Below, piece after piece: positions 3,231-40,771 of a stretch of DNA of 64,000 nucleotides. Position 1 is the stretch's first letter. Every line of letters begins with the position of its first letter. The position numbers were made by a program, and so were the translations under genes. The stretch is taken from IMG/VR virus record IMGVR_UViG_3300025536_000010, positions 62,001 to 126,000 of that record; one strand, written 5' to 3'. The notes below the pieces were generated by a model. It did no database searches. It saw nothing but the letters and a program-made list of their open reading frames with translations, and was not told the origin of the DNA.

Positions 3231-3644
3231 ATGCCACTTAACGCAAGGGAAGCATTCAAGGTTGGTTTCCTGGCCCGCTGCGTCGAGGACGGCTTGAGCC
3301 CCGACGAGATGCTGGACCGTGTCAAGTTCGCTGCTGAACTCCTGGAGAAGCGCGCCGGCATCATTAGCACGCTCGGCGGTAAACTGGCCGACGTCGGCCA
3401 GGGTATCGGCTCAGCGGCGCTCGGCTACGGCTTGCCGCTGGCCCTGGCGGCCCCACCCATTTTGGGCGGAGTCGCGGGCTACGGCTTAGCCAGAGCCACC
3501 GACATCGACGACACCGACATCGACGACGTCAAGGACCGCGAGGTCATGGACGAGTACGTCCGGCAGACAGCCAGGCTCAAACGGCAGCGGGCGGCGCGCG
3601 ACTACCAGAAGGCAAAGCAGCAGACAGGCCGGATCTTCATGTAA
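3231..3644 (+). CDS. Hypothetical K-x-A motif protein
   Basis: AAGGAGG SD; VKFA, EKRA followed by a Gly-rich hydrophobic segment. Confidence 0.75.
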   Translation: MPLNAREAFKVGFLARCVEDGLSPDEMLDRVKFAAELLEKRAGIISTLGGKLADVGQGIGSAALGYGLPLALAAPPILGGVAGYGLARATDIDDTDIDDVKDREVMDEYVRQTARLKRQRAARDYQKAKQQTGRIFM

Positions 3645-3659
3645 GCAGGGTGAACCCCT

Positions 3660-4094
3660 ATGCCTTCGAGCTTGGTGAAGTTCAGCAACCGGACACGGGC
3701 ATCGGGGGGTCGCCACCTCCACTGGAACCGGCTAGAGTTCGACGGCCTGCCGTTCCGCGGCGACATGGCCCCGATCATGCCGGAGGAGGAGTACGAGGCC
3801 CGAGCCGTTCGCATCTCCGATTTCCGCAACGGCTTTTTCGATGTCCAGGACGCTCAGGAGAACAAGTGGTACTGCGACGTGATGGAGTGCTGCTTCAACG
3901 GCTGGTTCAAACTGTGGTACGAAGAAAAGTTCTGGGTCGGGCCGGACGGCAAGCGCACCACGAAGCATTACCTGGAGTGGGTCGAATACTATATGGAGGA
4001 CGGCACGCGGACGCCGTTCGTCACCAGTGGCATGATGGAGATGGCGCATGGACAGCAAAACCTCCTCGGACATTATCAGCAGGGTCCGGGCTGA
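3660..4094 (+). CDS. Hypothetical protein
   Basis: 144-aa aromatic-rich globular ORF in the frame with typical codon bias. Confidence 0.7.
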   Translation: MPSSLVKFSNRTRASGGRHLHWNRLEFDGLPFRGDMAPIMPEEEYEARAVRISDFRNGFFDVQDAQENKWYCDVMECCFNGWFKLWYEEKFWVGPDGKRTTKHYLEWVEYYMEDGTRTPFVTSGMMEMAHGQQNLLGHYQQGPG

Positions 4095-4965
4095 GAAGCA
4101 GGCGTTTCTGGGTCTGGGCGAGGCACAGCCGGACACGGCTGGGTTCGCTGACGCGATCCAGGACATGGCCTCGGCGCAGCTCAAGGCCGACGCGGGCCGC
4201 GACGTGCGCAACCTGGCCCTAGCTGCCCTGGGTGTGGGCGTCGCCGGGCGCGGGGCCGTGGGCCTCGTCAACGCGCTCAAAGGCGACAAGCCGAAGAAGA
4301 CGCGCAGCGGCCCTACCATGCTGCCCTTGCCGTACCCGGTCGAGCCGGCGGTCATGCCCGGCAACATCAAGGCCGGCGGCTTCCTCAGCGGGGACGCCGC
4401 TTCCACGAAGTCCGGCATCCCCTGGTACACGCCGGCCATGTTCCTCGGCGGCCTGGGTGGGCTGGCGGCCGGCTGGAAAGGCATGGACGCACTGCTGGAC
4501 GCGCGTCGCAAGAAGGAGCGCGAGAACGAACTGATAACCGCCCGCCAGCAGTTCCACGACGCGCTGCTGTCGCAATACGACAAGCCCCTGGCACTCAAGA
4601 AGGCAGCCGAGGCGACGACGATGGAGAAGGTCGGCGCGCTTCTGGACAGCCTGTTCGACAAGTTCACCGGCACCCTGGAGAAAACCTCCATCGACTGGTC
4701 CAACCTGGGCGGGATGGCCACGGGCGGCTACGGGGCCTACGCCGGCCTCTCGGGCCTGCTTGCCGGCGCCCTGGTCTACGACAAGATCCAGAAGCGTTCG
4801 CAGCGTGCGGTCCTGGAGAAGGCCATGCAGCGCCGACAGCGGCGCGAGTTCATGCAGCGGCCGACCGAGATCTACGCGATCCCGGAGCCGGTGTCAGCCG
4901 TGCCCAAGGCCAACTTCAAGGACGAGATGAAGCTCCTGACGGAGTCTCCCGAAGCGGAGGTGTAA
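4048..4965 (+). CDS. Hypothetical K-x-A motif protein with glycine zippers
   Basis: EKQA, IKAG, KKAA, EKTS; three GxxxG hydrophobic segments. Confidence 0.75.
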   Translation: MDSKTSSDIISRVRAEKQAFLGLGEAQPDTAGFADAIQDMASAQLKADAGRDVRNLALAALGVGVAGRGAVGLVNALKGDKPKKTRSGPTMLPLPYPVEPAVMPGNIKAGGFLSGDAASTKSGIPWYTPAMFLGGLGGLAAGWKGMDALLDARRKKERENELITARQQFHDALLSQYDKPLALKKAAEATTMEKVGALLDSLFDKFTGTLEKTSIDWSNLGGMATGGYGAYAGLSGLLAGALVYDKIQKRSQRAVLEKAMQRRQRREFMQRPTEIYAIPEPVSAVPKANFKDEMKLLTESPEAEV

Positions 4966-4966: not shown

Positions 4967-7900
4967 GTGGCTGGACTGCTGGCCGATTTCCCCAAGCCGA
5001 AAGCGCCAGCGCTGGACCTGCCCCAGACGAAGGCGCAGTCGATCTTGTCCAGCGGGCCGTTGACGGCCCCGCCTACCCCCGCGCCGCAAATGCGGGAGTT
5101 CGGCGATGCGCGCCTCACGCGCCAATACATCTACGAGGACGCCCTGAACGCCGCCCGCAACATCGAACCCATCGAAGACGAACGCTACCGCCTGCGGCTG
5201 GCCGACGTGGACTGGGCCGACCCGGAACGCTTCACGCGCAAGCAGCGCAAAGCGGCAATCCTGGCCGGCGACACGCTGGCTCGGCGCCTGCGCGGCAGCT
5301 GGGTATTGGAGGACGTTGCCACGGGTAAGGAGATCCAACGGCGCGCCCAGATCGTCGGCCGCATTCCTTACCTGTCCAGCATGGGCACGTTCGTCCACAA
5401 GGGGAACGAATACACCGTCAACCACCAGCAGCGATTGCGGCCCGGCGTCTTCGCCCGCGTCAAAGACAACGGCGAGATCGAGAGCCATGTCAACGTACTG
5501 CCGGGTAAGGGCGTCTCGCACCGCTACTTTCTGGACCCGGAGAAGGAACTGTTCAAGCTGCGGCTCGGACAGGCCGAGATGCCGCTGCTGCCGCTAGTCC
5601 AGGCCCTCGGCGCCACCGACAAGGAAGTCCGCGAGGCGTGGGGCGACCAGCTGTTCGCGGCCAACTACAAGCACCTGGACAGCGGCCAGACTATCAAGAA
5701 GCTGGCCGCGCGCCTGCTGCGCCGCGCCGACCAGGGTTTAGACGAAGGCACGACGCGGCAACGGCTGGCCGATACGATCAACCGTATGGAACTGGACCCG
5801 GAGGTCACCAAGCGCACGCTGGGCCAGCCGTACGCCAACCTAAACAAAGAAGTTATCCTCAACGCCACTAAAAAACTGATCCAGGTCAACCGCCGCGAAG
5901 TTGACCCCGACGACCGCGACAGCCTGGCCTACCAGCAATTCTTCGGCCCCGAAGACCTGTTCGCCGAGCGCCTGCGGCGGGACCACGGTAACCTGCGGAA
6001 ACAGCTGTTCAGGAAGATCGCCCTGGCCGGCAACCTGGACAAGATGCCCAGCGGCGCGCTGACGCCCCAGGTCGAGCAGGTGCTGCTCGGCAGCGGGCTC
6101 GCGCAGGCACTCGAAGAGATCAACCCGGCCGAAGTCTTCGATAAGCAGAGCCGTATCACGCGCATGGGCGAGGGCGGTATCCCAAGCCTAGACGCGATCC
6201 CCGACGAAGCCCGCGCCGTACAGCCGTCGCACATGGGTTTCATGGACCCGCTGCGGACACCGGAGAGCTTCCGCGTCGGCGTCGACCTGCACATGGCGCG
6301 CAGTTCGCGCAAAGGCCGCGACGGCCGCATCTACACGAGCCTCCGCGACCAGCAAGGGAACATGGTTTGGAAGTCCCCGCAGGACGTGGCTGAGGCAAGC
6401 ATCGCTACGCCGGACGTGCTCAAATGGGACACGAAGCGCGTGCCGGTGATGAAGGGAGGCAAGCTGGCCTATGTTCCGAAGAATGAAGTGGATTTTGTCC
6501 TACCTAACTTCGAGGACTCGTTTTCGCCGCTTGGTAACATGGTGCCGCTCAAGAGCATGGTCAAAGGCCAGCGCGTCGCAATGGCCAGTCGCATGCTCAC
6601 CCAGGCCCTCCCCCTCACCGCCGCCGAGGCTCCGCTTGTACAATCCGGCTTGCCTGGCAGTAAGGGCGCCCGGAGCTTCGAGGAAGAATACGGCAAGCAC
6701 ATGGGAGCAGTGGCGGCTGATTCGGACGGACGGGTCGTCGATGTCCGTGACGGAGTTATTAAGCTCAAGTACAACGACGGCCGCACCGACGAGGTCGAAC
6801 TCTACGAGAACCACCCGTTCAACCGGAAGACCTACATCAACCAGACCGCGGTAGTAAAACCAGGCGACGCGATTACGAAAGGACAGCTGCTGGCTCACAG
6901 CAACTACACCGACAAGACCGGGGCGACGGCGCTGGGCACAAACCTGAACGTCGCCTACTGGCCCTACCTGGGTTACAACTTCGAGGACGCGGTGGTGATC
7001 TCGGAGAGCGGGGCCAAGAAGATGTCCTCCGAGCACATGTACCAGCACGACTTGGAGGTCACGGACAAGCACAAGATCGGGAAGCGGCATTACGTCAACC
7101 TCTTCCCCGGTAAGTTCGACAAGAAGGCGTACGAGAACCTGGACGACGACGGCATTGTTCGGCCCGGCACCGTCGTCAACCACGGTGACCCGCTCATCCT
7201 GGCTGCGCGGCAGAAAGAGTTCGCGCAGAACAAGATCCACAAGAAAAAACAGGCAGGGTACGGCGATGAGTCTCTACTGTGGAAGCATCACGATCCTGGG
7301 GTTGTTACCGACGTCGTGTGGGGCAAAAACGGGCCTGTCGTCCTGGTTAAGTCCCAGTCTCAAATGCAAGTCGGCGACAAGCTCTCCGGCCGTTACGGCG
7401 ATAAAGGAGTGGTCGCGGCCATCGTCCCCGACAGCCAGATGCCGCACGGTCGGGACGGTAACCCCTTCGAGCTTCTCCTGAACCCGCTGGGCGTCATCAG
7501 CCGCACCAACCCGGCACAGAAAGTCGAGGCTCAGCTGGGCAAGATCGCGCGCTTGACCGGCAAGCCCGTCAAGGTGCCCGATTTCGAGGACGAGGAAGAC
7601 CTGACGGCCTGGGCACAAATGCAGCTGCGGATGCACGGCCTCAAGGACACCGAAGACATCGTCTGGCCCGAGAAAAACATGAAGGTGCCAGGCATCCACT
7701 CCGGTACGCGCTTCTTCATGAAGCTGCACCACACCGCCGAATCCAAAGGCCAGGGTCGCGGCGGTGGCTCCTATTCGATGGACGACACGCCGGCTAAAGG
7801 TGGCGCACAGGGTTGTTTCCTGGCCGGCACGCACCTGCATACGGCTGAGCACGGTTTTCAGGACATCGCCCGCATCGTCGGCCGGCGCATGCCTGTCAAA

Positions 7901-8113
7901 GTGCTGACTCGGCGGCCGGGCGGCGTACACCAGCAGTGGCTGCCGGTCACGGACTGGTTCCACTACCGGGTCGACGCAAACGCACTGGTGACGCTGCGGC
8001 TTGGTAACGGCCGGGAGATCCACGTCACCAGGAACCACGAGTTCGTCATGGCAGACGGCACGCGGAAACTGGCGGGCGACCTGGTCGCGGGCGACGACCT
8101 GATGGAGGTTTGA
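4967..8113 (+). CDS. rpoB: Phage RNA polymerase beta subunit (N-extein, 949 aa) fused to N-terminal split-intein half
   Basis: RpoB motifs GTFVHKGNEYTVNHQQRLRPGVF, HMGFMDPLRTPES, GYNFEDAVVIS, GDKLSGRYGDKGVV, LNPLGVISRTN, FMKLHH; ends in an intein-like CFLAGT...VTRNH. Confidence 0.93.
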   Translation: MAGLLADFPKPKAPALDLPQTKAQSILSSGPLTAPPTPAPQMREFGDARLTRQYIYEDALNAARNIEPIEDERYRLRLADVDWADPERFTRKQRKAAILAGDTLARRLRGSWVLEDVATGKEIQRRAQIVGRIPYLSSMGTFVHKGNEYTVNHQQRLRPGVFARVKDNGEIESHVNVLPGKGVSHRYFLDPEKELFKLRLGQAEMPLLPLVQALGATDKEVREAWGDQLFAANYKHLDSGQTIKKLAARLLRRADQGLDEGTTRQRLADTINRMELDPEVTKRTLGQPYANLNKEVILNATKKLIQVNRREVDPDDRDSLAYQQFFGPEDLFAERLRRDHGNLRKQLFRKIALAGNLDKMPSGALTPQVEQVLLGSGLAQALEEINPAEVFDKQSRITRMGEGGIPSLDAIPDEARAVQPSHMGFMDPLRTPESFRVGVDLHMARSSRKGRDGRIYTSLRDQQGNMVWKSPQDVAEASIATPDVLKWDTKRVPVMKGGKLAYVPKNEVDFVLPNFEDSFSPLGNMVPLKSMVKGQRVAMASRMLTQALPLTAAEAPLVQSGLPGSKGARSFEEEYGKHMGAVAADSDGRVVDVRDGVIKLKYNDGRTDEVELYENHPFNRKTYINQTAVVKPGDAITKGQLLAHSNYTDKTGATALGTNLNVAYWPYLGYNFEDAVVISESGAKKMSSEHMYQHDLEVTDKHKIGKRHYVNLFPGKFDKKAYENLDDDGIVRPGTVVNHGDPLILAARQKEFAQNKIHKKKQAGYGDESLLWKHHDPGVVTDVVWGKNGPVVLVKSQSQMQVGDKLSGRYGDKGVVAAIVPDSQMPHGRDGNPFELLLNPLGVISRTNPAQKVEAQLGKIARLTGKPVKVPDFEDEEDLTAWAQMQLRMHGLKDTEDIVWPEKNMKVPGIHSGTRFFMKLHHTAESKGQGRGGGSYSMDDTPAKGGAQGCFLAGTHLHTAEHGFQDIARIVGRRMPVKVLTRRPGGVHQQWLPVTDWFHYRVDANALVTLRLGNGREIHVTRNHEFVMADGTRKLAGDLVAGDDLMEV
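7814..8110 (+). other. Split intein N-half (IntN, 99 aa)
   Basis: Block A Cys1 (CFLAGT), block B TxxH (VTRNH), ends LAGDLVAGDDL then stop; no C-terminal Asn. Confidence 0.9.
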
Positions 8114-8116
8114 GTC

Positions 8117-10030
8117 ATGGAAGACCTTGGAGTCTTGGCGGCGAAAGCCGCTACGCTGCGCGTGAAACTGGCAAACGTGGCGGCCTTGGCGGCTTCGCCG
8201 GCCGGCGAGAGCGCACTCGCGCGCCTGGGCGGTTGGCTGTCCGGCAAAGCATTCAAGCCGGTATCGCAGATGGCTCGTCCGCAGTTCGGCACGCTTAACG
8301 CGCTTGGTGAAGAAGCGCAGGCGCTGGCGCGCCAGCAGCGCATGAGCCGGCTGACTCTAGGCTTATCCGACAAGCCGTACTTCCATGTTCAAGATCGTGT
8401 TGGTGGCGGCTTAGCCGGTGCCTGGCTCGGTGCGTACGCAGACAGTAAAGTGAACGGCGAGGTCAACGACCTCTCCAGTGCCGGGCGCCGTGCGGCAGCG
8501 GTGCTCGGCGGCGGTTATCTGGGCGGTAAAGGCGCGAACTCGGCTTTGAACGTCGGCCGCAAGTTTACAGCGAACACGTCGCCGCTCATGGGTTACGACA
8601 CGGCTTTGATTCCGAAAGTGTCGCTCAAGTCTATCTGGAACCACGGCGTCATGGACCGCCCAATGGGCGGCATCGCGCGCGGCGGTAGCGGCAGTGAGGC
8701 TAACCCGCGCTACGAACTGCTGCGGCGCTATCTCGGCATTCACAAGAACGACGCGGCCAAAGACATGTTCATCTCGAACGCGGACAAGTCGCTGTCGTTC
8801 AACCCGGCAGTCGTAAAGCCTGGCTCGAAAACATGGCAGCAGTACATTGACCCAGGGCGGCAAGACAGCAGCCTGGGTGTCCGATTCAGCGAGGGCCTCA
8901 AGAACCCACCCAAGCTCGAAGTACCCAATAGCGCCCCGCCCAAGCTCGAAGTATCCGGCAACGCCCCGGCCAAGAGTCTCATTCTTCCGGGCGCTAACCC
9001 GGAACCGCCGCGCAGCGTTTTGCTGGGCGGTGGCCAGCCGACAGGGCCGGCTAAAAAGCTGATCCTGCCGGGACAGGAACCAAACGCACCTGCACCGGCG
9101 CTGGTCATGCCCGGTCAAGGTCAAGCGCCCAGACCTGCGCCGAAGCCAGCGGCCCCGGAGAAAACGTACAGCCTCAACGAGGGCGACCTGGCTAACCCAC
9201 CTGGGTACAGCGTCGACCAGAAGAACAACCCGTTCAACAATCTGTTCGGCTCGCACGACATGCGCCACGTCCAGGGCTCTGTTGAGCGCTTGCCGGGCGG
9301 CAAGTTCCGCACCTCGCACGAGCTAGGTGACACCTGGAACTTCCGTCTCGACCCGCACGAGACGCCAGAAGCCGCTGCTTACCTCAAAGGCATGGCTGGC
9401 ACGTCGCCTAACCGCTGGGGCGAGTTCCTCAAGCAGAAGGCGGACATCGGACACGCCAGTGCCTACGGCGGCCCGGATAAAACAGTGAGCGACCGGCTCA
9501 AGAACTACGGCATGCGCAGTGTCATCGAAGCGGCAGCACAGAAAGAAGCTCCGGTCATTCGGCAACGTATGCGCTTCACTTACGAGGCACCTACCGAAGC
9601 CAACGCGGCTTTCGCCAAGGCGACTGGCGGAGTAGCGCCGAGCGAGATCGAGTTGTTGTCGTCCAACGTCGCCGGGCCTGCCGTGCTTAGCCCCGAACGT
9701 CAGCAAATGCTGCGGCGGCTGCTTGGCGGCAGTGCAGTCGCGGGCACCGGCGGCCTTTACGCGAGCGGCCAGCTACCGAGCAAAGACACGCCCCAGGCTG
9801 CAACGCCACAGCCGCAGCCGCTAACGCCAAAACAAGAGGCACCTGCGTCGAAGACGTGGCGACCACGGGGACGAGAAGCACTATCGGCTTTCTTCCGCAA
9901 GCCGAAGTCTGAGCTATCTACTCGGCAGAAAATGATCCGCGGTGTCACCGACCGCGCGGCCGGCGGCATCCGCAGCTTCTGGGACCGTATGCAGCAGCGT
10001 TATGGCGGCAGTGGAGGGCTCGGAGCGTGA
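8117..10030 (+). CDS. Hypothetical 637-aa protein between the split-intein halves
   Basis: GGAGG SD; stop overlaps the next start (GTGA); N-terminal AKAA/VKLA, Gly zippers, Pro-rich repeats; no LAGLIDADG, HNH or GIY-YIG motif seen. Confidence 0.8.
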   Translation: MEDLGVLAAKAATLRVKLANVAALAASPAGESALARLGGWLSGKAFKPVSQMARPQFGTLNALGEEAQALARQQRMSRLTLGLSDKPYFHVQDRVGGGLAGAWLGAYADSKVNGEVNDLSSAGRRAAAVLGGGYLGGKGANSALNVGRKFTANTSPLMGYDTALIPKVSLKSIWNHGVMDRPMGGIARGGSGSEANPRYELLRRYLGIHKNDAAKDMFISNADKSLSFNPAVVKPGSKTWQQYIDPGRQDSSLGVRFSEGLKNPPKLEVPNSAPPKLEVSGNAPAKSLILPGANPEPPRSVLLGGGQPTGPAKKLILPGQEPNAPAPALVMPGQGQAPRPAPKPAAPEKTYSLNEGDLANPPGYSVDQKNNPFNNLFGSHDMRHVQGSVERLPGGKFRTSHELGDTWNFRLDPHETPEAAAYLKGMAGTSPNRWGEFLKQKADIGHASAYGGPDKTVSDRLKNYGMRSVIEAAAQKEAPVIRQRMRFTYEAPTEANAAFAKATGGVAPSEIELLSSNVAGPAVLSPERQQMLRRLLGGSAVAGTGGLYASGQLPSKDTPQAATPQPQPLTPKQEAPASKTWRPRGREALSAFFRKPKSELSTRQKMIRGVTDRAAGGIRSFWDRMQQRYGGSGGLGA

Positions 10031-10149
10031 AAATAACTTCGGTAGAACCGTTCGCCGGCACTGCGGATCTGGAGGGGAAGGTGGACGTCTACGACATTAC
10101 CGTCGCGGACCTCCACCTTTACGGCGTCTACGGAGTGCTGGTGTCCAAC
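10027..10149 (+). other. Split intein C-half (IntC, 41 aa)
   Basis: MKITS...VYDITV..LH.Y...GVLVSN followed by +1 Ser (10150); same architecture as cyanobacterial DnaE IntC (MIKI...VYDIGV..DHNF....ASN). Confidence 0.9.
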
Positions 10150-11787
10150 AGCAAGCGCGTGGCCATGCTGGACACCAACGCCCTGCTGTCGCACGGGGCC
10201 ACGGAAACGCTGCGTGACGTCCGCCTGATTCGCGGCCAGGGCCGAGCCAGTGAGAACTACTGGCTCCAGTTCATGATGGGTTACACGCCGGTCGACCCCA
10301 AGGTGCCGCAGACGCACGAGAAGTTCGTCAACCAGCTGAAAGCCTCTGGCATCAACGTGGTCCGCGACGGCTACCAGATGAACGTCATGGCCCTGACCAA
10401 CCGGGACGTGGACACCCTGGCGTCCGACCGCATCATCAAGAGCGGGGACACCGTGCGCTTCGACAAGGAACTCAAACCGATCCCGGGTGGCCTGTTCGAT
10501 CCCACGCTCACCGGCGGACACAACGGTAAGCGCTGGGCGGCTATCGAACTGCCCGAACCGATGCCCAACCCGGTCATGGAGGAGCCGATCCGGCGCATGC
10601 TGAACCTGACCCAGAAACAGTTCAGCGCCGTCCTGGCGGGCGAGCACGAACTGCCTAGCTTCGGCAGCGGCCCCAAAGCGATCACCCAGGCCCTGGAGAA
10701 CATCAACCTGGAACGCGAGTTGGCCAAAGCCAAGGCCGAATACACCCACGGACGCGGTACAGCCCGCGACGCTGCGCACCGGCGCTGGCAGTATCTCGAC
10801 GGCGCCCAGAAGCGCGGTCTGCATCCCAAAGATTGGATACTGAACCGCGTGCCAGTGCTGCCGCCGGCCTTCCGCCCGGTCAGCGTCATGGGGGACTCCG
10901 GCGTACCCCTGGTGTCGGACCCCAACTACCTCTACAAGGAGTTGCTCGACGCCAACAAGAATTTCACGGACATGGTCAAGCAGGTGGGGGACAAGAACGT
11001 CGGCAACGAGCGGCTGGCGGTCTACAACTCGTTCAAGGCGGTTACCGGCCTGGGCGAGCCTGTTCACCCCAAGCTGATCGAGAAAAACGTGAAAGGCATT
11101 CTCAAATCCGTTTTTGGAACCTCGCCGAAGTTCGGCACGGTGCAGCGGAAACTGCTGTCCTCGACCGTCGACAACGTGGGCCGCTCGGTCATTACGCCGA
11201 ACCCTGACTACGATATGGACACCATCGGCGTGCCCGAGAACCAGGCGTTCGACGTCTACTCGAAGTTCATCGTCCGCCGCCTGCGCCGCCGGGGCCTACC
11301 GATCCGCGAGGCTCTCAAGCACGTCCGCGACAAATCGGGCCTGGCCCGGGACGTTCTCCAGGAAGAGATGGACAACCGGCCGGTCTATGTCAACCGGGCT
11401 CCGGTGCTGCACAAATTCGGTATCATGGCCTTCCGCCCGCGGTTGATTAAGGGGGACGTCCTCCAGGTCAGCCCGTTGATCGTCAAAGGCTTCAACGCTG
11501 ACTTTGACGGGGACGCCATGCAGTTTCACGTCCCGTCGTCCGATGAAGCGGTCAAGGAAGCCTACGAGCGGATGCTGCCCAGTCGCTCGCTGCTTAGCCC
11601 GGCCGATTTCAAAAGCCCGGTCCACGCTCCTGGCCAGGAGTACCTGGGCGGGCTCTACTACGCGACGCGCCAGCGTGAGGAAGACAAGCAGCGGCGGCCC
11701 CGCGTGTTCCGTTCCGTAGCCGACGCCAAGAAGGCGCACCAGCGCGGCGAGATCACAGCGGACACGCCGATTCAGATCATGGAGTAA
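10027..11787 (+). CDS. rpoC: C-terminal split-intein half + RNAP beta C-terminus + catalytic N-half of beta'
   Basis: After the IntC: SKRVAMLDTNALLSHGA...QLKASGINV (beta end), then GGLFDP, VPVLPPAFRP, NRAPVLH, FNADFDGDAM (11494-11514), GLYYAT. Confidence 0.93.
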   Translation: MKITSVEPFAGTADLEGKVDVYDITVADLHLYGVYGVLVSNSKRVAMLDTNALLSHGATETLRDVRLIRGQGRASENYWLQFMMGYTPVDPKVPQTHEKFVNQLKASGINVVRDGYQMNVMALTNRDVDTLASDRIIKSGDTVRFDKELKPIPGGLFDPTLTGGHNGKRWAAIELPEPMPNPVMEEPIRRMLNLTQKQFSAVLAGEHELPSFGSGPKAITQALENINLERELAKAKAEYTHGRGTARDAAHRRWQYLDGAQKRGLHPKDWILNRVPVLPPAFRPVSVMGDSGVPLVSDPNYLYKELLDANKNFTDMVKQVGDKNVGNERLAVYNSFKAVTGLGEPVHPKLIEKNVKGILKSVFGTSPKFGTVQRKLLSSTVDNVGRSVITPNPDYDMDTIGVPENQAFDVYSKFIVRRLRRRGLPIREALKHVRDKSGLARDVLQEEMDNRPVYVNRAPVLHKFGIMAFRPRLIKGDVLQVSPLIVKGFNADFDGDAMQFHVPSSDEAVKEAYERMLPSRSLLSPADFKSPVHAPGQEYLGGLYYATRQREEDKQRRPRVFRSVADAKKAHQRGEITADTPIQIME

Positions 11788-11795
11788 CACCTGCC

Positions 11796-11825
11796 TTGTC
11801 CGGCCACGCCGGAGTAGGCTACACT
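11796..11825 (+). promoter_or_regulatory. Possible sigma70-type promoter
   Basis: TTGTCC-N18-TACACT in the intergenic gap before 11867. Confidence 0.3.
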
Positions 11826-11866
11826 ATACCCGCAGTACGGATACCAACAAGGAAAGGGAGTTCCGC

Positions 11867-12604
11867 ATGAGCACCCCTTCGCACGGCGATCACCTGGTCA
11901 ATCTCGAAGTCATCAGGATGGCACGTCAACAGCTTGGCGGCTTCCAGAAACAAGCCTTCATCCCAGCTAGCGACCCCGGCATGGGAGCCGGCGGTGGCGG
12001 CGGTGGTGGCGGGGGCGGCGCTCCTCCAATGGACCCCGCGATGATGGGCGGCGGCGGGGGCGGCGCTCCTCCGCCCGATCCTGCCGCTGGCGGCGGTGGC
12101 GGTGGCGGCGGTGGTGGGCTCGATCCCATCATGCAAATGATGACGCAGATGCAGCAGCAGATCCAGCAGCTGACCCAGGGCGGCGGCGCGGGCGGCGGCG
12201 CGGGCGGCGCGCTGAAACCCAAAATCGACGTCAACGTCGAGATGATGCAGATCAAGAACATGCTCGCCAAGATCTGCGACCACCTCGGCATTCAGATCCC
12301 GGCCCAGGACATGGTCGCCACGCCTGAGAAGCTCATGGCGATGTCCCAGGGGCAGTCGGCGGCTTCGCCTCCTGGCACGGGGGCCGGCGGCGCAGGGGCT
12401 GGCGGTGCGGGTGCCGGGGCCATCCCGCCGATGGACCCGATGCAGGGCATGCAGCCCGCCGGCTCGCCTGGCGGCGAGAAGATGGGGGCGCACCGTCCCT
12501 ACAGAGCCAACGGGCAAGCCTACGACGGAACTGCTCTGGCGTCGGGCCTGGGCGAAACGCACAATCGGGCCGCGGCAATCATGCGGCTGCGTCAGGCGGC
12601 ATAA
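11867..12604 (+). CDS. Gly/Met/Pro-rich low-complexity protein (K-x-A motif)
   Basis: QKQAF near N-terminus; poly-Gly runs with MDP/APP motifs. Confidence 0.75.
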   Translation: MSTPSHGDHLVNLEVIRMARQQLGGFQKQAFIPASDPGMGAGGGGGGGGGGAPPMDPAMMGGGGGGAPPPDPAAGGGGGGGGGGLDPIMQMMTQMQQQIQQLTQGGGAGGGAGGALKPKIDVNVEMMQIKNMLAKICDHLGIQIPAQDMVATPEKLMAMSQGQSAASPPGTGAGGAGAGGAGAGAIPPMDPMQGMQPAGSPGGEKMGAHRPYRANGQAYDGTALASGLGETHNRAAAIMRLRQAA

Positions 12605-12607
12605 CTC

Positions 12608-12934
12608 ATGGCTATGATCGTCGAGATTATCCCGGAAGGCGGTATCGGTCGGCGGGATGCCTTGGTTGTCCCGGCGTCCCAGATCATCATCCGCCAAGAC
12701 GACGGCACTCCGCTCATGGTCGCCGCCGTTTACGGCCCCGAGGGCGCCATCGCCTGCGGGTCAGTCAGCCACGATGAAGAGGAGTTCAACCGCTTCCTGC
12801 GGATGCTCAACATTCACCAAACCGTCATGGTGCAACGGATCAAGATGCCACCACCGCCGCCCGGGGCCAGGCTCGTCGCCGGCCCTAAGAGCCCTAGCCT
12901 CACGCACAAAAAGGAGATCATCCTTGGCAAGTGA
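12608..12934 (+). CDS. Hypothetical protein
   Basis: 108-aa ORF abutting both neighbours. Confidence 0.65.
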   Translation: MAMIVEIIPEGGIGRRDALVVPASQIIIRQDDGTPLMVAAVYGPEGAIACGSVSHDEEEFNRFLRMLNIHQTVMVQRIKMPPPPPGARLVAGPKSPSLTHKKEIILGK

Positions 12935-14132
12935 ACTTCCTGGCGGCCAACGCCGCCGACGCCCGGCCGTCGACCGCACGCGCGTCCGTACAGCCGATGA
13001 GTATTACAAGAGCGGCGACGTGTCCGCCGTCCAGGGCGGCAACACCGCGGCCGACAGCACGCTCAAGCCGGGCCAGGCGCCGGTGCCTGCGGCCGCGCGG
13101 CGGAAACCGGCGTCCGACCGCAGCCGCGTCCGTTCGGCCGACGAGTATTACAAGGCACAGGACCAGGCCCCGACTGCCGAACAGATCAGGGCCGGGCAGG
13201 TCCGTGACCCTCGCCGTCTTGGCCCACCACCGCAGCTGGGCGCGCCGCAGGCGCTGCCGGCCAAGCAGCCACGGTTGCCCAAGCCGGGGCGCCAACGGCC
13301 CGAACTGCTCATCACCCAGGCGGACGAGATCAACGGCGTCATGCAGGAAGTCGTCAGCCGCCTAAGCATGGGCGAGCAGCGCGTGATCGTCTACGTCGCC
13401 AAGGGGCAGGTGCCCCTGCTGCGGCGCGCCAGAACCAATCTGGAACTGCTGGTGACCCGCGAGGTCATCACCGAGGACCAGGCGCGTGACGTGACCTTCT
13501 CCTACGAGCAAGGCGAGGAGGCCAAAAAGGCCATCGACGCCAAGCTAGGAGCCGCGCCGACTTTCGAGAGCCAGCCCACAGTCAGTGTCGACGCCAAAAA
13601 GGCGGCTGACACGGAGATCGACCCGCTGGCCTTCCTCAACGGTGAGGGCGACGACCCGGACGACCCGAAGATCGACGTCTCGCCAGTTGCCGAGCAGGAT
13701 CAGGTCGAGGTCGACACGTCGAACGATCCAGACGCCAAACCGGACGTCGATGACGACGACGGCGCGGACAATACTTTCCTCAACCCGGAGAACAAGGAAG
13801 CCGCGGCGTTCTCGATTCCGTTCAACAAGCTGCCCGAGAATCTGATAATCGACCCGAACAAGCCGGGCGTCATGGGCGTTGACCCGGCCGCGCCGGAAGG
13901 CGACCGCACCGTGGTCGAGGTTCAGCAGCCCGAAGAGACGGTCGTGCAGGTCACCTCGGGCAACCTGCAACCCATGCAGCAGATGGAAGGCGCCGGCGAC
14001 AAGGGCGAAGACGTGCCGAACCTGGGCAGCCACATCGAGGCCCCAACCGAGGCGATGGAGGGTGTCGGCGACGCCCCCAAGCCGCAGCAGCAATACCGTC
14101 GCGGCGGTCGACGCTCCGGTCGCGGCTCGTAA
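12924..14132 (+). CDS. Hypothetical acidic protein with duplicated DRxRVRxADEYYK motif
   Basis: TTG start 12924 after AAGGAG SD, in frame with the listed 12657 ORF. Confidence 0.7.
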   Translation: MASELPGGQRRRRPAVDRTRVRTADEYYKSGDVSAVQGGNTAADSTLKPGQAPVPAAARRKPASDRSRVRSADEYYKAQDQAPTAEQIRAGQVRDPRRLGPPPQLGAPQALPAKQPRLPKPGRQRPELLITQADEINGVMQEVVSRLSMGEQRVIVYVAKGQVPLLRRARTNLELLVTREVITEDQARDVTFSYEQGEEAKKAIDAKLGAAPTFESQPTVSVDAKKAADTEIDPLAFLNGEGDDPDDPKIDVSPVAEQDQVEVDTSNDPDAKPDVDDDDGADNTFLNPENKEAAAFSIPFNKLPENLIIDPNKPGVMGVDPAAPEGDRTVVEVQQPEETVVQVTSGNLQPMQQMEGAGDKGEDVPNLGSHIEAPTEAMEGVGDAPKPQQQYRRGGRRSGRGS

Positions 14133-14216
14133 GAGTCCTCCTTTCGGCGGGCGTGGGTTACAAAGGATTGTGGCCCACGTCCGTTTTCTAAAAGCCAGTT
14201 TTGAGGGAGGGAGCCC

Positions 14217-14627
14217 GTGTTCGATACCATCCGCTCTTGGTGGCGAGGCGTCCCCAAACACGAAGTCAAAGAGGTCGAGTGGGGGCGACGGATCGCCAAG
14301 GCGCTCACGACCTACGGCCTGGCCACCCGCGACGAGGTCCGCATCTTCGACGGCACGCGCATCGACCTGCTTACGCCACACCATGCCGTCGAGATCGACT
14401 GGGCGCCGAAGTGGGCTGAGGCCATCGGACAGTCGCTCTACTACGGCGTCCGGTCCAAAAAGCAGGCCGTTGTCCTCCTGCTGCTGTGCGACTCCCGCGA
14501 CGAGGCGTATATCGTCCGCTGCCGCGCGGTCTGCACTACGAATACGCCCAAGATTCCGATTTGGCTGCTCAACACCAAGAGCCGTGTTTTGTACCTCGCG
14601 GACGGACAGACGATCACGGTGGAGTAA
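14217..14627 (+). CDS. PD-(D/E)xK-like nuclease
   Basis: E...DGTRIDLLT...AVEID...KWAEAIGQSLYY, a restriction-endonuclease-fold pattern. Confidence 0.6.
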   Translation: MFDTIRSWWRGVPKHEVKEVEWGRRIAKALTTYGLATRDEVRIFDGTRIDLLTPHHAVEIDWAPKWAEAIGQSLYYGVRSKKQAVVLLLLCDSRDEAYIVRCRAVCTTNTPKIPIWLLNTKSRVLYLADGQTITVE

Positions 14628-17600
14628 TGCTCAAAACCACGATGGGGCAGCTGCTTGTCAATGACTCGCTGCCCGAAGACCTGCGCGATTACGGGCGCAT
14701 CCTCGACAAAAAGGGGATGGCGACCTTGCTGCGCACCGTGGCCGAGAAATACCCGGACCAGTACCGCGACGTCTCGAAGAAGCTGGCCGACATCGGCCGC
14801 AACGTCGCCAGCGAGTTTGGTGGCAACAGTTTCGGGCTGGCGCACATGGCCAAGTCCGGCCTGGGGCAGCAGTACCAGAAGAACTTGCAGGCGAAGCTCA
14901 AGCAGATCCTTGACGATGACAACCTGGACGACGCTAAGCGGCAGGAGTTGATCGTCAAAGCGGCGGGCATGGACCGCGAGAAGCAGATGAAGTCGATCCT
15001 GGAAGAGGCCATCAAAAACAAGAACCCGCTGGCCTCCCAGGTGATCTCCGGTTCGCGCGGCAACGAGATGAACCTGGCCTCGCTGCTGGACTCCGACCGG
15101 CTGTACTCCGACCACCGGGATCAGCCGCTGGCCATCCCTATCGTCCACAGCTACAGCCAGGGCCTGCGGCCCATCGAATACTGGGCTGGCACCTACGGCG
15201 CCCGCAAGGGCGTCATGGCGACCAAGTTTGCCACCCAGGACGCCGGCTTTTTGAGCAAGCAGTTAAACCAGGTCGCCCACCGTCTGATGGTGGTGGACGA
15301 GGACGACCCGCGCTACGAAGGCGACCCGACACCGCGCGGCTTGCCGGTAGACACAGACGACCCCGACAACGAAGGGGCGCTGCTGGGCATGGACGTTGGC
15401 CCGTACAAGCGGAACACCGCGCTGACTCCCAAAATTCTCAAGGACTTGAAAAGGAGGGGACATGCTCGCCTTCTTGTCCGAAGCCCGGTGGTGGGCGGCA
15501 GTCCTGATGGTGGTATTTACGCACGGGATGTTGGTGTGCGTGAACGTGGCACTCTTCCTGGTCGCGGTGAGCAGGTTGGACTCACCGCTGCCCAGGCGCT
15601 GTCGGAGCCGCTGTCGCAGGGGCAGCTGTCGGCTAAGCATTCGGGCGGCGTCGCGGGGCAGGAGAAAGCGGTCGGCGGCTTCCAGTACATCAACCAGCTG
15701 ATTCAGGTGCCCAAGGTGTTCAAAGGCGGGGCGGCGCACTCAAACGAGGACGGCAGCGTCGAACGGATCGAGGAAGGTCCGGCCGGTGGCCAGTTCGTCT
15801 GGATCAACGGCAAGCGGCACTACGTCGGCGAGGGTTTTGAGTTGAAGGTGAAACCTGGCGACCAGGTCGAGGCTGGTGACCTGATCTCGGAAGGTCTGCC
15901 CAACCTGAACGTCGTTGTGGACCATAAGGGACGTGGCGAGGGCGCACGCTATTTCGTCAACTCGTTCGTGGACGCGATGCGCGGGGCCGGGCTCAAGGTC
16001 AACCGGCGCAACGTGGAAGTGCTGGCTCGGGGGCTTATCAACCATGTCCGACTCACCGACGAGTTCCAGGGCAACCTGCCCGACGACGTTGTCCCCTACA
16101 GCACCCTTGAGCACCTCTACGAACCACGCGAGGGTCACCAGACTCTACGAACTGAGCGCGCTTTGGGACAATACCTTGAGCGCCCAGTTCTACACTACAG
16201 CATCGGCACGAAGGTCCGCCCTTCGGTCCTTAAAGAGCTTCAACAGTTTGGTATTAAGGAAGTTGCTGTTCACGCAGAGCCGCCTCCGTTCAAGTCCGAG
16301 ATGATCCGTGGTATGTACTCCCTCCAGCACGACCCGGATTGGATGACCCGCATGTACGGCTCCGGCCAGAAGTCGAGCCTGCTGGAGGCGGTTCACCGTG
16401 GCCGCAGTTCCAACGAACTCGGCACCAGTTTCGTGCCCGGTCTGGCTCGCGCCGAAGAGTTCGGGCGCGTGGGCCAGGTACGCCAGCCGCTACCCGGCAC
16501 GAAGCCGCCGCTCATCGAGCCCGTCACGGAGGACGAGGAGATGCCCAAGAAGAAGCCAACGACGCCGCCGACTTCGCCGATCGCGCTGAACCTCCAGCCG
16601 CCCAAGACCCCCGCACCCAAGAGCATGTTCGGCGGCATGGGGTCCATTTTCAAGCTCTCCTGTGACGCCCTAGAACAGCGGCGGGAGGCCGAGATCCTGC
16701 TGGAGAAAGCTGCTAAGCGGATCGAACAGGTTCGCCAGGCCACAGCCAAGACCAAGCAGACGCAGCAGGTGAAAGCCAGCGCACCTTTGCAGCCTGTTCG
16801 ACGCGCGCAGCAGATCAAGACGGCCGAAACGAACATCGGCAGCAGCACCGTCACGGCTGGTGGCACGACGATCAAGCCGAGCAGTCAGGGCAGCGCAGCA
16901 CCGAAACCGCCCACACCGGCAGCACCGCCAGGCGGGGACGCCTGGAGCGGTCCGCGCGGACCCGCCAACCCGACTTTCGGCGTCGGCCGCAATCCGCACG
17001 CGCTGGGCCAGGGTGGCTACAACCCGGGCATGCCGTCCGGCATCGTCAACGACCCGGAAGCGTTCTCCCGCTTCGTTGACAGCAGCCAACGATTCGGCGG
17101 GTTGACCGGCGGGGCTGTTGCTTTCGGCTCTGGCCTCGACCAGAACGCCGTGGCCACGCTGACCAACCAGAGTCCCTACGTCAAAGGGCACTACGGCTAC
17201 AGCGAGTTCGACCGGCCCACGCCGCCAGGTTACCACCCCGGCATCGGGCGCCCCGGCATGCGCGGCGGCCAACCTGGCAGGTACGGAGGCCACCCCGGTA
17301 TGCAGGACGCTGACGGCATGGACTTCGACGGTGGCTACCCCGGTTTTGACCCCTGGCAGGATCAAGGCGGGCAGCAGCAGACTCAACAGCAGGCGCCACC
17401 GCAGCCCGGTTTCGGCGCGGGCGACATGCTCCAGATGGCTCCCGGCATAACGTCTATGGGCTCCACTGGCGCGCAGCTGGGCGGGCTAGCCACACGCGGG
17501 CTGGGAGCCGCAGCGAACGCCACAGGGGCCACGCGCGTCGGCGGCGCGCTGGGACGCACTGGCGGGGCGTTGGGCCGGGCCGGCGGCTTGGTCGGCAAAG

Positions 17601-18658
17601 CCGCTACGCCGCTGGCTGTAGCCGTGGACACCGGCCAGATGATCGGACATTCGATCAACGACATCAGGAACGGACAGTTTTTCGGCGGCAACGGCGAAGT
17701 AGCCCAGGGTACGCGCCGCACGATGGACGAAATGAACAACGCCACGGACCTCTCGCGCTGGACGGACCCGAACGTCAGCAAGTTCGACCAGCTGATGGAC
17801 ACGACGCACCTCATCAACCCGGTGAGCTATGCACGGTCAGCGGGTGGCGTCATCGGCGACGTGGCCAACACAGCCATCTACGACATGCCGGCCATCCTGG
17901 GCGGCGATTTCAAAGACATGACCAGGCTAGAGTCGTCGTCGAACATCGGCAAGCACTTCGAGTCCCAGCAGAAGATCCAGCAGATGCTCTCCGACGACCA
18001 GCACAAAAAGACCCTGGCCGGCAAACAGGACGGTATCAACCCGTTCCAGTTCACGCCGCATTTCGACCCGAACAAGGACGCACTGACCAACACCTACAAC
18101 AGCCTGACGCGCTCGAAGAACCCGCTTGCCAACGTCATCGGCACCGCCCAGGATCTGCACACGTCCGTCTCGACCATGAAAGGCCAGACCGAGGGCCAGG
18201 CTCGCGGTTTCGAGCAGATCATGTCCGACCGCCGAGCCGCGAACGAGCAGCGGGCGACGCAGCTGCGCGACCTCAAGGGTAAAGGTTTCGCCCTGTCGCC
18301 GGAGGAACAGGCCATCGTCGCCAAGGCCGACGCCGACCGCAACAAGACGGAGGCCCAGCTGGTCCTGGAGGCATCCGGGTTCAAGCCAGGCGATACGAAT
18401 ACCGCGCTGTACATGACGATGGGGCACAAGTCGATCAACCCATTCGATGGCGAGCAGCGCGCCAGCGCCCTCAACCCTGTCTCCGGTCGCCGCTTGGCCG
18501 AGGAAGCGCAGACGGCCATCGACCACGGCGACACCGGCCAGCGTGTCGCCGGGCACGCCGTCAAGGACTTCACGAGCCCGGTGGCTAGCTGGGAACAGAT
18601 CCGCAGCGGTGACTTCCGCGTGCCCGGGTGGAACAGCGTTAAGTCGCTGTGGGACTAA
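14627..18658 (+). CDS. rpoC: RNAP beta' C-terminal half fused to a long low-complexity extension
   Basis: Starts MLKTTMGQLL; SGSRGN; bridge helix GARKGVMATKFATQDAGFLSKQL; trigger loop AAQALSEPLSQGQLSAKHSGG; RRNVEVLARG; RNAP homology ends near 16470. Confidence 0.9.
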   Translation: MLKTTMGQLLVNDSLPEDLRDYGRILDKKGMATLLRTVAEKYPDQYRDVSKKLADIGRNVASEFGGNSFGLAHMAKSGLGQQYQKNLQAKLKQILDDDNLDDAKRQELIVKAAGMDREKQMKSILEEAIKNKNPLASQVISGSRGNEMNLASLLDSDRLYSDHRDQPLAIPIVHSYSQGLRPIEYWAGTYGARKGVMATKFATQDAGFLSKQLNQVAHRLMVVDEDDPRYEGDPTPRGLPVDTDDPDNEGALLGMDVGPYKRNTALTPKILKDLKRRGHARLLVRSPVVGGSPDGGIYARDVGVRERGTLPGRGEQVGLTAAQALSEPLSQGQLSAKHSGGVAGQEKAVGGFQYINQLIQVPKVFKGGAAHSNEDGSVERIEEGPAGGQFVWINGKRHYVGEGFELKVKPGDQVEAGDLISEGLPNLNVVVDHKGRGEGARYFVNSFVDAMRGAGLKVNRRNVEVLARGLINHVRLTDEFQGNLPDDVVPYSTLEHLYEPREGHQTLRTERALGQYLERPVLHYSIGTKVRPSVLKELQQFGIKEVAVHAEPPPFKSEMIRGMYSLQHDPDWMTRMYGSGQKSSLLEAVHRGRSSNELGTSFVPGLARAEEFGRVGQVRQPLPGTKPPLIEPVTEDEEMPKKKPTTPPTSPIALNLQPPKTPAPKSMFGGMGSIFKLSCDALEQRREAEILLEKAAKRIEQVRQATAKTKQTQQVKASAPLQPVRRAQQIKTAETNIGSSTVTAGGTTIKPSSQGSAAPKPPTPAAPPGGDAWSGPRGPANPTFGVGRNPHALGQGGYNPGMPSGIVNDPEAFSRFVDSSQRFGGLTGGAVAFGSGLDQNAVATLTNQSPYVKGHYGYSEFDRPTPPGYHPGIGRPGMRGGQPGRYGGHPGMQDADGMDFDGGYPGFDPWQDQGGQQQTQQQAPPQPGFGAGDMLQMAPGITSMGSTGAQLGGLATRGLGAAANATGATRVGGALGRTGGALGRAGGLVGKAATPLAVAVDTGQMIGHSINDIRNGQFFGGNGEVAQGTRRTMDEMNNATDLSRWTDPNVSKFDQLMDTTHLINPVSYARSAGGVIGDVANTAIYDMPAILGGDFKDMTRLESSSNIGKHFESQQKIQQMLSDDQHKKTLAGKQDGINPFQFTPHFDPNKDALTNTYNSLTRSKNPLANVIGTAQDLHTSVSTMKGQTEGQARGFEQIMSDRRAANEQRATQLRDLKGKGFALSPEEQAIVAKADADRNKTEAQLVLEASGFKPGDTNTALYMTMGHKSINPFDGEQRASALNPVSGRRLAEEAQTAIDHGDTGQRVAGHAVKDFTSPVASWEQIRSGDFRVPGWNSVKSLWD

Positions 18659-36900: not shown

Positions 36901-37897
36901 GACAAAGCTGTACATCAGCGACCAGGACTTGAACGCGGTCAACATCGACACCTGGCTCGGCTCTTGGACGGGTTCATCGTCCGTGGTCAAGGGTGCGTTG
37001 AAACTTGCGCAGTACGTCCCGGGCGGCGGCGGGCCGCTCAACTGGGCGATCTTCCTCATTACGACGTACACCGATAACGGCAGCTGGTACGATTTCGATG
37101 TCACCTATCAGGCGCACTCGGGTAGCTTCTCTGCGGACGACGACATCGACATCGCTTTCGACCGCACTGGCGACAAGGGCAGCCAGGGCGACCAGGGCTT
37201 CCAGGGCATTCGTGGCAGCCAGTGGACGTCGAACGGCATGGACCCGAGCGGCGGCAGCCCGCAAACGAACGATCAGTGGTTGAACACCACCAGCGGCAAC
37301 GTCTTCTACTGGGACGGCGACAGCTGGGAACTGACAGGCAACATCAAGGGCGAGCAGGGCCTGCAAGGGTTCCAAGGTAATCAAGGAGAGCAAGGTTTCC
37401 AAGGAAATCAGGGTTTCCAAGGAAATCAAGGCGAGCAAGGTTTCCAAGGAAATCAAGGCGAGCAAGGCTTCCAAGGCTTCCAAGGTGACCAAGGCGCCCC
37501 AGGGGCCAAGGAAGCCATTATGCCGACCCGCGTCGAAGACGCGGAGGAGTATGTCGCGCTCGTCTGCACCGAGGCCCCGCAAGCCACTTTCCAGGACCAC
37601 ATGATTGTGGTCGTGCGACAGGCCCGGGAAGAGTTCGAGATCGACCCGTACTTCGTTCAGGTCTGCGAGCCGGGGTCGATCATGGTGACGGCAAGCCAGC
37701 CCAACCGAGCCGTGCCGGTGGGAGCCTACGTCACGAACGCCGGCAAAGTGGTCGTCGAGGCGGAACATCCCGAGCAGTTCCGCGTCATCCTGACACTGAC
37801 CGGCACGCGCCGCGGCGCCCCGGCGCGGTTCAGCCGCCGTAGCCGCGAAGACATGGAGAAGAACATCCGCTTCTGGGACAGCTGGAAGCAGCTGTAA
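33977..37897 (+). CDS. Collagen-like fibre protein with five repeated globular domains
   Basis: Extensive (G-x-Q)n triplets interleaved with five Y.[YW]...T...DPG.G..[RK]..N domains. Confidence 0.85.
36112..36183 (+). repeat. Perfect 18-bp tandem repeat x4 (GAQGLQ)
   Basis: aggagcccagggcctgca repeated four times. Confidence 0.9.
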
Positions 37898-40755: not shown

Positions 40756-40771
40756 TAACAAAGTGTGTTCC

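Follow-up and report, generated by a model that had tools for sequence, protein, structure and literature searches.

A phage RNA polymerase family in which beta is fused to the N-terminal half of beta' and the rest of beta' is encoded by a separate gene

Introduction

How are the two large catalytic subunits of RNA polymerase (RNAP) divided among the genes of a tailed phage, and how could such a division have arisen? The question is raised by a locus on IMGVR_UViG_3300025536_000010, a 234,886-bp IMG/VR phage contig from a subsurface metagenome. The window analysed here is a stretch of 64,000 nucleotides of this contig, has a GC content of about 63%, and carries its genes all on the plus strand. 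It is assigned to a phage because of its origin in IMG/VR and because of the homology of its polymerase to those of cultured myoviruses; scans with Pfam and PHROG left almost all window genes outside the polymerase set without a match. The polymerase region consists, in this order, of an open reading frame (ORF) at 4967-8113, ORF B, an ORF at 10027-11787, genes D, S, E and F, and an ORF at 14627-18658. A first-pass annotation of the sequence had proposed that beta is fused here to the catalytic half of beta', with the remainder of beta' on another gene.

The analysis described below leads us to consider it likely that the window encodes a bacterial-type two-barrel RNAP composed of a beta-beta'N chain, which would be formed by trans-splicing, and a separate beta'C chain, and that this partition, common to a whole phage family, arose by fusion and subsequent fission. 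The window has both double-psi barrels as well as the bridge helix and the trigger loop, all of them intact.

Results

The beta reading frame continues into the N-terminal half of beta'

The larger part of beta, which is the N-extein of an intein treated below, is encoded at 4967-7813 and comprises 949 amino acids (aa) when read from the GTG at 4967; a start at the first ATG would shorten it to about 908 aa. It matches the Pfam families RNA_pol_Rpb2_6 (E 4.3e-53) and Rpb2_3 (E 5e-6), and a phmmer comparison with E. coli beta covered residues 112-1261. The beta double-psi barrel motif GDKLSGRYGDKG at 7373-7408 is the lysine-bearing GDK...G(N/D)KG segment and matches E. coli beta 1057-1129.

The end of beta lies on the ORF at 10027-11787. 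Its C-extein of 545 aa opens with SKRVAMLD at 10150, and local alignment and the family alignment A3 assign the last 70 aa of beta (approximately E. coli 1267-1337) to 10150-10359. The beta C terminus, HEKFVNQLKASGINV, ends with SGINV and stops at position 10359. From there the reading frame is uninterrupted: without a stop codon it crosses a 9-aa junction, VRDGYQMNV (10360-10386, delimited by the alignments to E. coli and A3), and enters MALTNRD at 10387, which corresponds to E. coli beta' 22-28. These 9 aa replace the five C-terminal residues of beta together with its stop codon, the intergenic gap, and residues 1-21 of beta'. Its consensus, GINVVRxGxxxNxMALTDKDV, is kept throughout the core family in alignment A3, and because the segment itself is conserved in this way it is not a loose linker.

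The N-half of beta' (approximately E. coli 22-552) then occupies 10387-11787, as judged from Pfam matches to Rpb1_2 (E 2.2e-26) and Rpb1_1 and from A3. It contains KPIPGGLFDP, followed by NADFDGD at 11494-11514, as well as the clamp coiled-coil, and the three aspartates of NADFDGD are invariant in A3. The comparison by phmmer covered E. coli beta' 156-521, and in the Protein Data Bank (PDB) the cyanobacterial gamma subunit gave the best match (8syi_D, E 1e-53). The beta' Zn-binding domain (approximately E. coli 60-100) is absent from the whole family. The ORF terminates with ...TPIQIME and a stop at 11787. The in-frame fusion of beta to the NADFDGD-bearing half of beta', as first proposed, is thus borne out by the translation of 10027-11787, in which no stop occurs through the junction.

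The rest of beta' is a separate gene that begins at a surface hairpin

The core of the beta' C-half, about 614 aa, is encoded at 14627-16470 and matches Pfam Rpb1_5 (E 1.4e-16). The gene opens with MLKTTMGQ, which holds the TT.G motif (approximately E. coli beta' 569-575), and carries the bridge helix at 15176-15277 and the N-terminal helix of the trigger loop at 15566-15649. The SI3 insertion is absent, and a region H-like segment is found at 16376-16465. With phmmer, E. coli beta' 719-955 (residues 132-357 of the phage protein) and 1194-1271 were matched. That bridge helix and trigger loop reside on a gene of their own, which begins at the TT.G motif, had been stated in the first-pass annotation and agrees with the start sequence, the Pfam match and the phmmer alignment. 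The ATG of the gene overlaps the stop codon of gene F (TAATG), and all the polymerase pieces have a Shine-Dalgarno sequence in front of them.

The N-terminal piece ends at approximately E. coli beta' 551-552 and the C-terminal piece begins at approximately 568-569. Alignment to E. coli and within A3 indicates that the site of the break is a two-stranded hairpin, VKVRITEY...LVAKTSLKDTTVGR, minus its tip. The mapping of the split points on E. coli that had been asked for therefore gives the hairpin tip at beta' ~552/568 for the break and beta' 22-28 for the junction. The locus does not encode a complete beta-beta' fusion: the first piece stops at 11787, the second starts at 14627, and four genes lie between them.

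The fusion is not an artefact of sequencing or assembly

An uninterrupted junction could also result from the loss of a stop codon near 10360 through a sequencing or assembly error, or from a chimera of bacterial rpoB and rpoC. A re-assembly from Logan (a subsurface metagenome run) was compared with window positions 7700-11900, and over these 4.2 kb, at a word depth of about 25x, it showed 0 differences. Since the run probably comes from the same sample, the comparison provides an independent assembler and not an independent sample; the window sequence is present in only this one run, which is DNA and probably the source sample. Third-position GC (GC3) backs the polymerase frames, with 0.82-0.85 in frame, and no stops or frameshifts occur in the approximately 6.3 kb of polymerase coding sequence besides those at the intein. 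The junction is moreover common to about 80 loci, 150 database representatives and two sets of cultured phages. As for a chimera, the closest rpoC genes in 185,579 species genomes (a prokaryote scan with one genome per species) are only 30-35% identical and are ordinary and unfused. An artefact can, on this evidence, be set aside with near certainty.

The partition is conserved in a very large phage family

A scan of IMG/VR for the family returned 116 related stretches, of which 80 were fetched. In these approximately 80 loci the end of the beta part coincides exactly with the start of the C-extein, and the junction is uninterrupted in every relative examined. Most loci have one ORF of 1,460-1,500 aa comprising beta and beta'N, with a beta'C of 620-680 aa located 0.85-6.4 kb downstream. 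The others have ORFs of 1,800-2,380 aa, or in some cases shorter broken ones, with in-frame insertions or other interruptions; the in-frame insertions are read as inteins. Examples of long fused ORFs are L082:4454-11605 (2,383 aa) and L063:5636-11617 (1,993 aa). Recurrent break points in the fused gene were observed at query 324-334 and at query 456-463, the latter directly behind NADFDGD.

A protein search with the 545-aa segment yielded 7,816 matches in 1.84 billion proteins, and the 150 best representatives (E <= 1e-142) were inspected. In all 150 the segment forms the C-terminal end of a longer chain, and nearly all of the C-terminal tails inspected have the ending ...D..V.I.E. An intact NADFDGD-like motif is found in 55 of the 150, and in none of these 55 is it followed by a bridge-helix motif. 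The median length of these best representatives is 1,896 aa, with 106 of 150 exceeding 1,600 aa, compared to approximately 1,470-1,500 aa without inteins; from these lengths, the family is heavily colonised by inteins. Within the scan of 185,579 prokaryotic species, the fused gene occurs in only three contigs, which are phage-looking contigs of 160-204 kb from metagenome-assembled genomes (MAGs).

Cultured members exist as well, namely Salmonella phage Arash, with gp206 (1,525 aa) and gp216, and the Vibrio phages D181, D148 and D69. These myoviruses of approximately 180-187 kb have the same partition, the same hairpin end and a beta'C of approximately 610-630 aa; the beta part of D181 is additionally interrupted near a homing-endonuclease gene. 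They differ from the window in being only about 30% identical, in lacking genes D and S between the pieces, and in having no intein at the window's site. The Arash proteins were annotated plainly as 'beta' and 'beta'', and the fusion was not mentioned (PMC10585845). A search of the literature other than subscription-only papers found no description of phage beta-beta'N or full beta-beta' fusions. A very large phage family, cultured phages included, thus has this partition as a conserved trait, and the idea that it is a layout peculiar to this genome has to be given up.

A full beta-beta' fusion probably preceded the split

This leads to the question whether the two-gene beta' is ancestral or derived. 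When IMG/VR was scanned again with E. coli beta' as the seed, two further groups were found. In the first, a beta' of approximately 890-935 aa is followed by a separate beta; this group includes L190, which matches a published mReC contig of 149,482 bp from the same metagenome. The second group consists of many contigs with a single ORF of approximately 2,020-2,400 aa that holds all of beta and all of beta'. Such full-fusion loci occur within L172-L237 (for example L173:3713-10159, L197:1205-7441 and L233:3782-9955); L085:3211-9420 and L086:3175-11796 are full fusions on MAG contigs, and across all of these the ORF measures about 2,020-2,870 aa. These proteins read through the break site, for example with IIRVGGAETTVGQ and DIIRVGGAETTVGQ, where the window has ...TPIQIME and a stop codon on one gene and MLKTTMGQ at the start of another. 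The full-fusion locus L229, the only one inspected in this respect, has a similar junction segment, GVNVERRGSKMVLQPMTDKE, and has lost the beta' Zn-binding domain, as has the window.

A tree of beta'N was computed from 114 rows with nucleocytoplasmic large DNA viruses (NCLDV) as the outgroup, by a quick search with support from the Shimodaira-Hasegawa-like approximate likelihood ratio test (SH-aLRT) only, and support values are given on this scale. Bacteria form one clade (98), the mReC-type sequences form another (99), and all fused forms form a third (97). The beta tree gives the same three groupings, with 100 for the mReC type. The branch between the family and bacteria has a support of 100, and the sequences accordingly do not nest in a bacterial clade with standard gene boundaries, a check that had been proposed from the start. 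On both trees the full-fusion contigs (L173, L197, L233, L085 and L086) belong to the same clade as the window, from which they differ in that their single ORF continues across the hairpin. The core family of the window is monophyletic (100), and the Arash group appears as a second split lineage. A single clade for all split forms was, however, not rejected by the approximately unbiased (AU) test (p-AU 0.57), and it scored above the quick free search.

Because the family sits inside a clade with complete fusions, the split of beta' is probably a secondary fission. The direction of this change is inferred from the outgroup rooting and from L172, a long-branched early full-fusion row. Judged from these sequences, the most likely course is one old beta-beta' fusion and then a fission of beta' at the hairpin, which possibly occurred once only.

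Three cultured phages with a bacterial-like beta' in other arrangements sit on long branches, and their placement is not settled by the tree. Escherichia phage EP_H11 (L166) has a 522-aa beta'N piece at 6308-7876 with a beta'C-like match upstream (3322-4377). Rhizobium phage RHph_TM30 (L164, 6401-9784) and Vibrio phage Va2 (L165, 6488-10066) have a full-length unfused beta'.

Beta is interrupted by a split intein on two ORFs

The beta sequence of the window is divided between E. coli beta G1266 and G1267, within the invariant GGQRFGEME segment. The N-half of a split intein, 99 aa, is encoded at 7814-8113; it has Cys1 (CFLAGT) and block B (TRNH, 8027-8038), and terminates with ...GDDLMEV and a TGA at 8111-8113. 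Its best PDB matches are the Npu and Ssp DnaE split inteins, and they are weak (E 0.003). The C-half, 41 aa, at 10027-10149, has block F VYDITVADLHLY, ends in GVLVSN with the terminal Asn, and is followed by Ser as the +1 residue of the extein. Its GTG start at 10027 overlaps the stop codon of ORF B (GTGA) and is preceded by GGAGG 10 nt upstream. What distinguishes a naturally split intein is therefore found here: separate ORFs, Cys1, TxxH, a terminal Asn and a +1 nucleophile. As the halves are on separate ORFs, the chain requires trans-splicing and not cis-splicing. The spliced chain of 949 + 545 aa proposed initially thus stands as to its sizes, provided that translation begins at GTG 4967 (otherwise the first part is about 908 aa), but the necessity of trans-splicing had not been stated.

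The intervening ORF B (8117-10030) encodes 637 aa, is rich in Pro, Ala and Gly, is nested between the intein halves, and has a GC3 of 0.72 in frame. GGAGG stands 9 nt before its ATG, so that a Shine-Dalgarno sequence lies ahead of both the ORF B start and the start of the C-half gene. Among 5.8 billion proteins a single partial homologue of ORF B was found. A homing endonuclease was considered and rejected, there being no Pfam or PHROG match and no endonuclease signature; nor is ORF B a paralogue of other window proteins, none having been found within the window.

The two-ORF split of the intein recurs in four relatives, L004, L005, L006 and L008. In L004 and L005 about 35 nt without an ORF lie between the halves; an ORF of about 105 aa (about 9558-9875) separates them in L006, and one of about 130 aa (about 9480-9878) in L008. 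The gene between the halves thus ranges from 0 to 637 aa among close relatives. The first and last approximately 30 aa of ORF B resemble the intervening ORFs of L006 and L008 (for example ...FWDRMQQRY and ...WWERMRARY), and the GTGA/ATGA overlap of start and stop at the C-half is found in L006 and L008 as well. Cys1, TxxH, the terminal Asn, the +1 Ser and the stop of the N-half are all kept in L004, L006 and L008, the C-exteins of which are 66-72% identical to that of the window.

The interruption could be taken as a sign of decay, in which the insertion of ORF B broke the intein, left beta incomplete and made the phage dependent on the host polymerase. The stop after the N-intein and the change of frame before the C-intein agree with this, as do the orphan status of ORF B and its weaker codon bias. 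Yet the same two-ORF intein with intact catalytic residues is present in relatives diverged to 66-72% C-extein identity, the approximately 6.3 kb of coding sequence has no other stop or frameshift and keeps its in-frame GC3, the translational-coupling overlaps and Shine-Dalgarno sites are conserved, and 99 + 41 aa is the canonical split position of natural split inteins. Decay is therefore judged improbable.

A second possibility is that the intein halves dimerise without splicing, which would give an enzyme with three chains (beta-N, beta-C + beta'N, and beta'C) in the manner of phiKZ and AR9. The penultimate residue of the intein is Ser instead of His, and a beta in several pieces does work in phiKZ-type enzymes (PMC7824862). 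On the other hand, approximately 140 extra residues are hard to fit within GGQRFGEME next to the active centre, and the site is uninterrupted in most family members. The retention of Cys1, TxxH, the terminal Asn and the +1 Ser in diverged relatives would also be unexpected if the chemistry were dispensable. We regard a non-splicing enzyme as unlikely, if slightly less so than decay. The conservation of the catalytic residues across relatives of 66-72% identity argues instead for a working trans-splicing intein, and the intein of the window is accordingly predicted to trans-splice.

A sigma70-like gene is present, and no alpha or omega gene was detected

A sigma70-like factor of 242 aa is encoded at 61377-62105, with a Pfam match to Sigma70_r3 that exceeds the gathering score (E 1.8e-9) and a weak one to Sigma70_r4. 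Based on these matches it is a candidate promoter-specificity subunit for the polymerase. No Pfam match to RNA_pol_A_bac, RNA_pol_L or Rpb6 was obtained in the approximately 48 window ORFs scanned, in line with the earlier statement that no alpha or omega gene is visible in the window. The gene inventory given at that time was right with respect to the polymerase parts but had missed the sigma70-like gene, the two-ORF split of the intein and the existence of relatives with complete fusions.

Genes between the polymerase pieces and elsewhere in the window

Gene D (11867-12604) was characterised by an iterative hidden Markov model (HMM) search and alignment A1; it encodes 245 aa, is rich in Pro, Ala and Gly, has conserved helices, and stands directly after the fused gene in 73 core-family loci. 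Gene S (12608-12934, alignment A2) encodes 108 aa here and about 80 aa elsewhere. It was found in 76 loci, in most core-family loci ending right at the beta'C start, where the window has genes E and F in between. The AlphaFold2 model of gene S (predicted local distance difference test, pLDDT, 86) has five strands and one helix and is not omega-like. Both were considered as alpha or omega and rejected. For gene S the PDB profile search gave nothing, there was no significant fold match, and the protein is not helical like omega; for gene D there was neither a PDB profile match nor a Pfam match. The ESM Atlas gave no lead for either gene, and neither is found next to full-fusion genes or at the polymerase loci of Arash and D181.

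Gene E (12940-14132, start uncertain) and gene F (14217-14627) have no family match in Pfam or PHROG and are limited to the subclade of the window, where they are inserted between gene S and beta'C. The longest ORF for gene E (12657-14132) overlaps gene S in another frame. Because third-position GC favours gene S up to about 12930, the start of gene E is probably at about 12940 and not at 12657.

The beta'C ORF continues beyond its core with a C-terminal extension of about 730 aa (16471-18658), which is of low complexity and rich in Gly, Pro, Gln and Ala. Comparable extensions are found only in the subclade of the window, with ORFs of approximately 1200-1650 aa in L004-L011, whereas in most family members beta'C measures 620-680 aa. 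One may speculate that this tail has a role in packaging or ejection.

Elsewhere the window encodes a DUF1653 protein at 7-342, a 1,306-aa protein with collagen triple-helix repeats at 33977-37897 (Pfam Collagen, E 1.5e-61), a protein with a weak ParB-like match at 40595-41959 (PHROG 723, E 8e-5) and an ORF of 2,024 aa at 52415-58489.

Discussion

The subunit architecture described here is real and conserved, and it is probably functional. In the proposed course of events, the intein halves would associate and trans-splice to give a beta-beta'N chain of 1,494 aa, which would then pair non-covalently with beta'C, as cyanobacterial gamma does with beta'. The sigma70-like protein of the phage would provide promoter recognition. 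The covalent link between beta and beta' may lessen or remove the need for an alpha dimer as assembly platform. Homology to the polymerase of Salmonella phage Arash suggests that the enzyme may be carried in the virion and transcribe early genes. In purified Arash particles gp206 had the most spectra, and gp216 and the sigma factor gp10 were abundant (PMC10585845).

Several points weigh against this account. The penultimate residue of the intein is Ser where His is usual, and the likeness of the intein to solved structures is weak (E 0.003). The branching order of bacteria, mReC and the fused clade is not settled by the trees, which are single-region trees without archaeal sequences and with bacteria drawn mostly from the nearest database matches. 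Host alpha could still serve the enzyme, because the search for alpha and omega used Pfam only and covered 64 of 235 kb. The Arash authors themselves note that particle proteins could be carried over from abundant proteins of the infected cell (PMC10585845). Trans-splicing, stoichiometry, activity and packaging are, for the enzyme of this phage, predictions.

A parallel to the break is found in the RNAP of cyanobacteria and plastids (gamma/rpoC1 and beta'/rpoC2), in which beta' is likewise divided between the NADFDGD domain and the bridge helix. The cyanobacterial break lies about 65-75 residues further downstream than that of the phage, and cyanobacterial beta is not fused to gamma. That the cyanobacterial split is slightly downstream had been pointed out in the first-pass annotation, and it follows from the comparison with 8syi_D, in which the phage piece falls about 65 residues short of the gamma C terminus. 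The cyanobacterial enzyme has alpha and omega.

Fusions of beta to beta' are known from Helicobacter and Wolbachia, where the C terminus of beta is joined to the N terminus of beta', the two termini being neighbours in the enzyme. These are complete fusions of otherwise ordinary full-length subunits, with nothing split off. The phage chain differs from them in being shortened by approximately 17 residues at the junction, in having lost the Zn-binding domain, and in that its beta' is broken further along.

Known split inteins of the DnaE type resemble that of the window in having their halves on separate ORFs and in being cut at the usual point of endonuclease insertion (here 99 + 41 aa). Split inteins with a gene between the halves were reportedly described as 'fractured genes' by Dassa et al. 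in 2009. The window intein differs from known split inteins in that its intervening gene has no detectable endonuclease domain and its host protein is an RNAP beta-beta' fusion.

A fusion of beta to part of beta', with the rest separate, has been described for the RNAP of yeast cytoplasmic linear plasmids (virus-like elements, VLE), K2ORF6p/K2ORF7p, where it was termed unique among RNAPs and an origin near poxviruses was argued (PMC6211774). The VLE enzyme is, in comparison to that of the phage, much reduced (974 + 132 aa). The phiKZ and AR9 RNAPs have beta and beta' each in several highly divergent pieces and no sigma (PMC7824862). In contrast, the window proteins have strong Pfam matches to cellular domains, beta is interrupted by the intein only, and a sigma-like gene is present. 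The earlier remark that phiKZ-like enzymes are the more divergent ones is upheld by the matches of the window to bacterial beta and beta' (E 4e-53 and 2e-26).

Like the window, the mReC phages are known from metagenomic contigs of tailed phages, and their beta and beta' align readily, resemble those of bacteria and fall outside the sampled bacteria (PMC7481178). They have, however, beta' (approximately 890-935 aa) first and a separate beta (approximately 1,000 aa), and form a clade of their own (99) that excludes the window. The survey that defined them called for a COG0085 hit and a COG0086 hit, both 800 aa or longer and the COG0086 hit with NADxDGD, and every entry in its table is a pair of separate proteins (Weinheimer and Aylward 2020, PMC7481178). 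The window genes are of another kind, the NADFDGD chain being a fusion with beta and beta'C being separate with a core of about 614 aa. Membership in the published mReC lineage, which the first-pass annotation had thought probable, is thereby rejected on the basis of gene architecture and of the trees.

The significance of these genes is greater as the hallmark of a large and overlooked clade of phage RNAPs than as the oddity of a single genome. It is conceivable, and we propose it tentatively, that they represent a large and essentially unstudied clade of tailed phages in which the catalytic subunits were fused long ago and were re-cut at a hairpin in one big subclade. The phiKZ/AR9 and crAss types of phage multisubunit RNAP would then be joined by a third, with Arash and D181 as cultured members. 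The metagenomic survey of phage RNAPs probably passed over the clade because it required two separate large-subunit hits; the diversity of phage RNAPs, and any use of these genes for a 'tree of life', would therefore be under-sampled. Since cultured members exist, composition, sigma dependence, rifampicin sensitivity, packaging and trans-splicing are directly testable. The genes are rich in inteins, and the natural split intein might serve as a tool.

Movable subunit boundaries reveal which contacts of RNAP are needed for its assembly, and here a beta-beta' fusion is conserved across hundreds of phage lineages and is split again at a defined hairpin on the surface. Should alpha and omega prove dispensable for the enzyme, it would represent a compact bacterial-type polymerase that assembles by itself, and would bear on how the alpha platform became essential.

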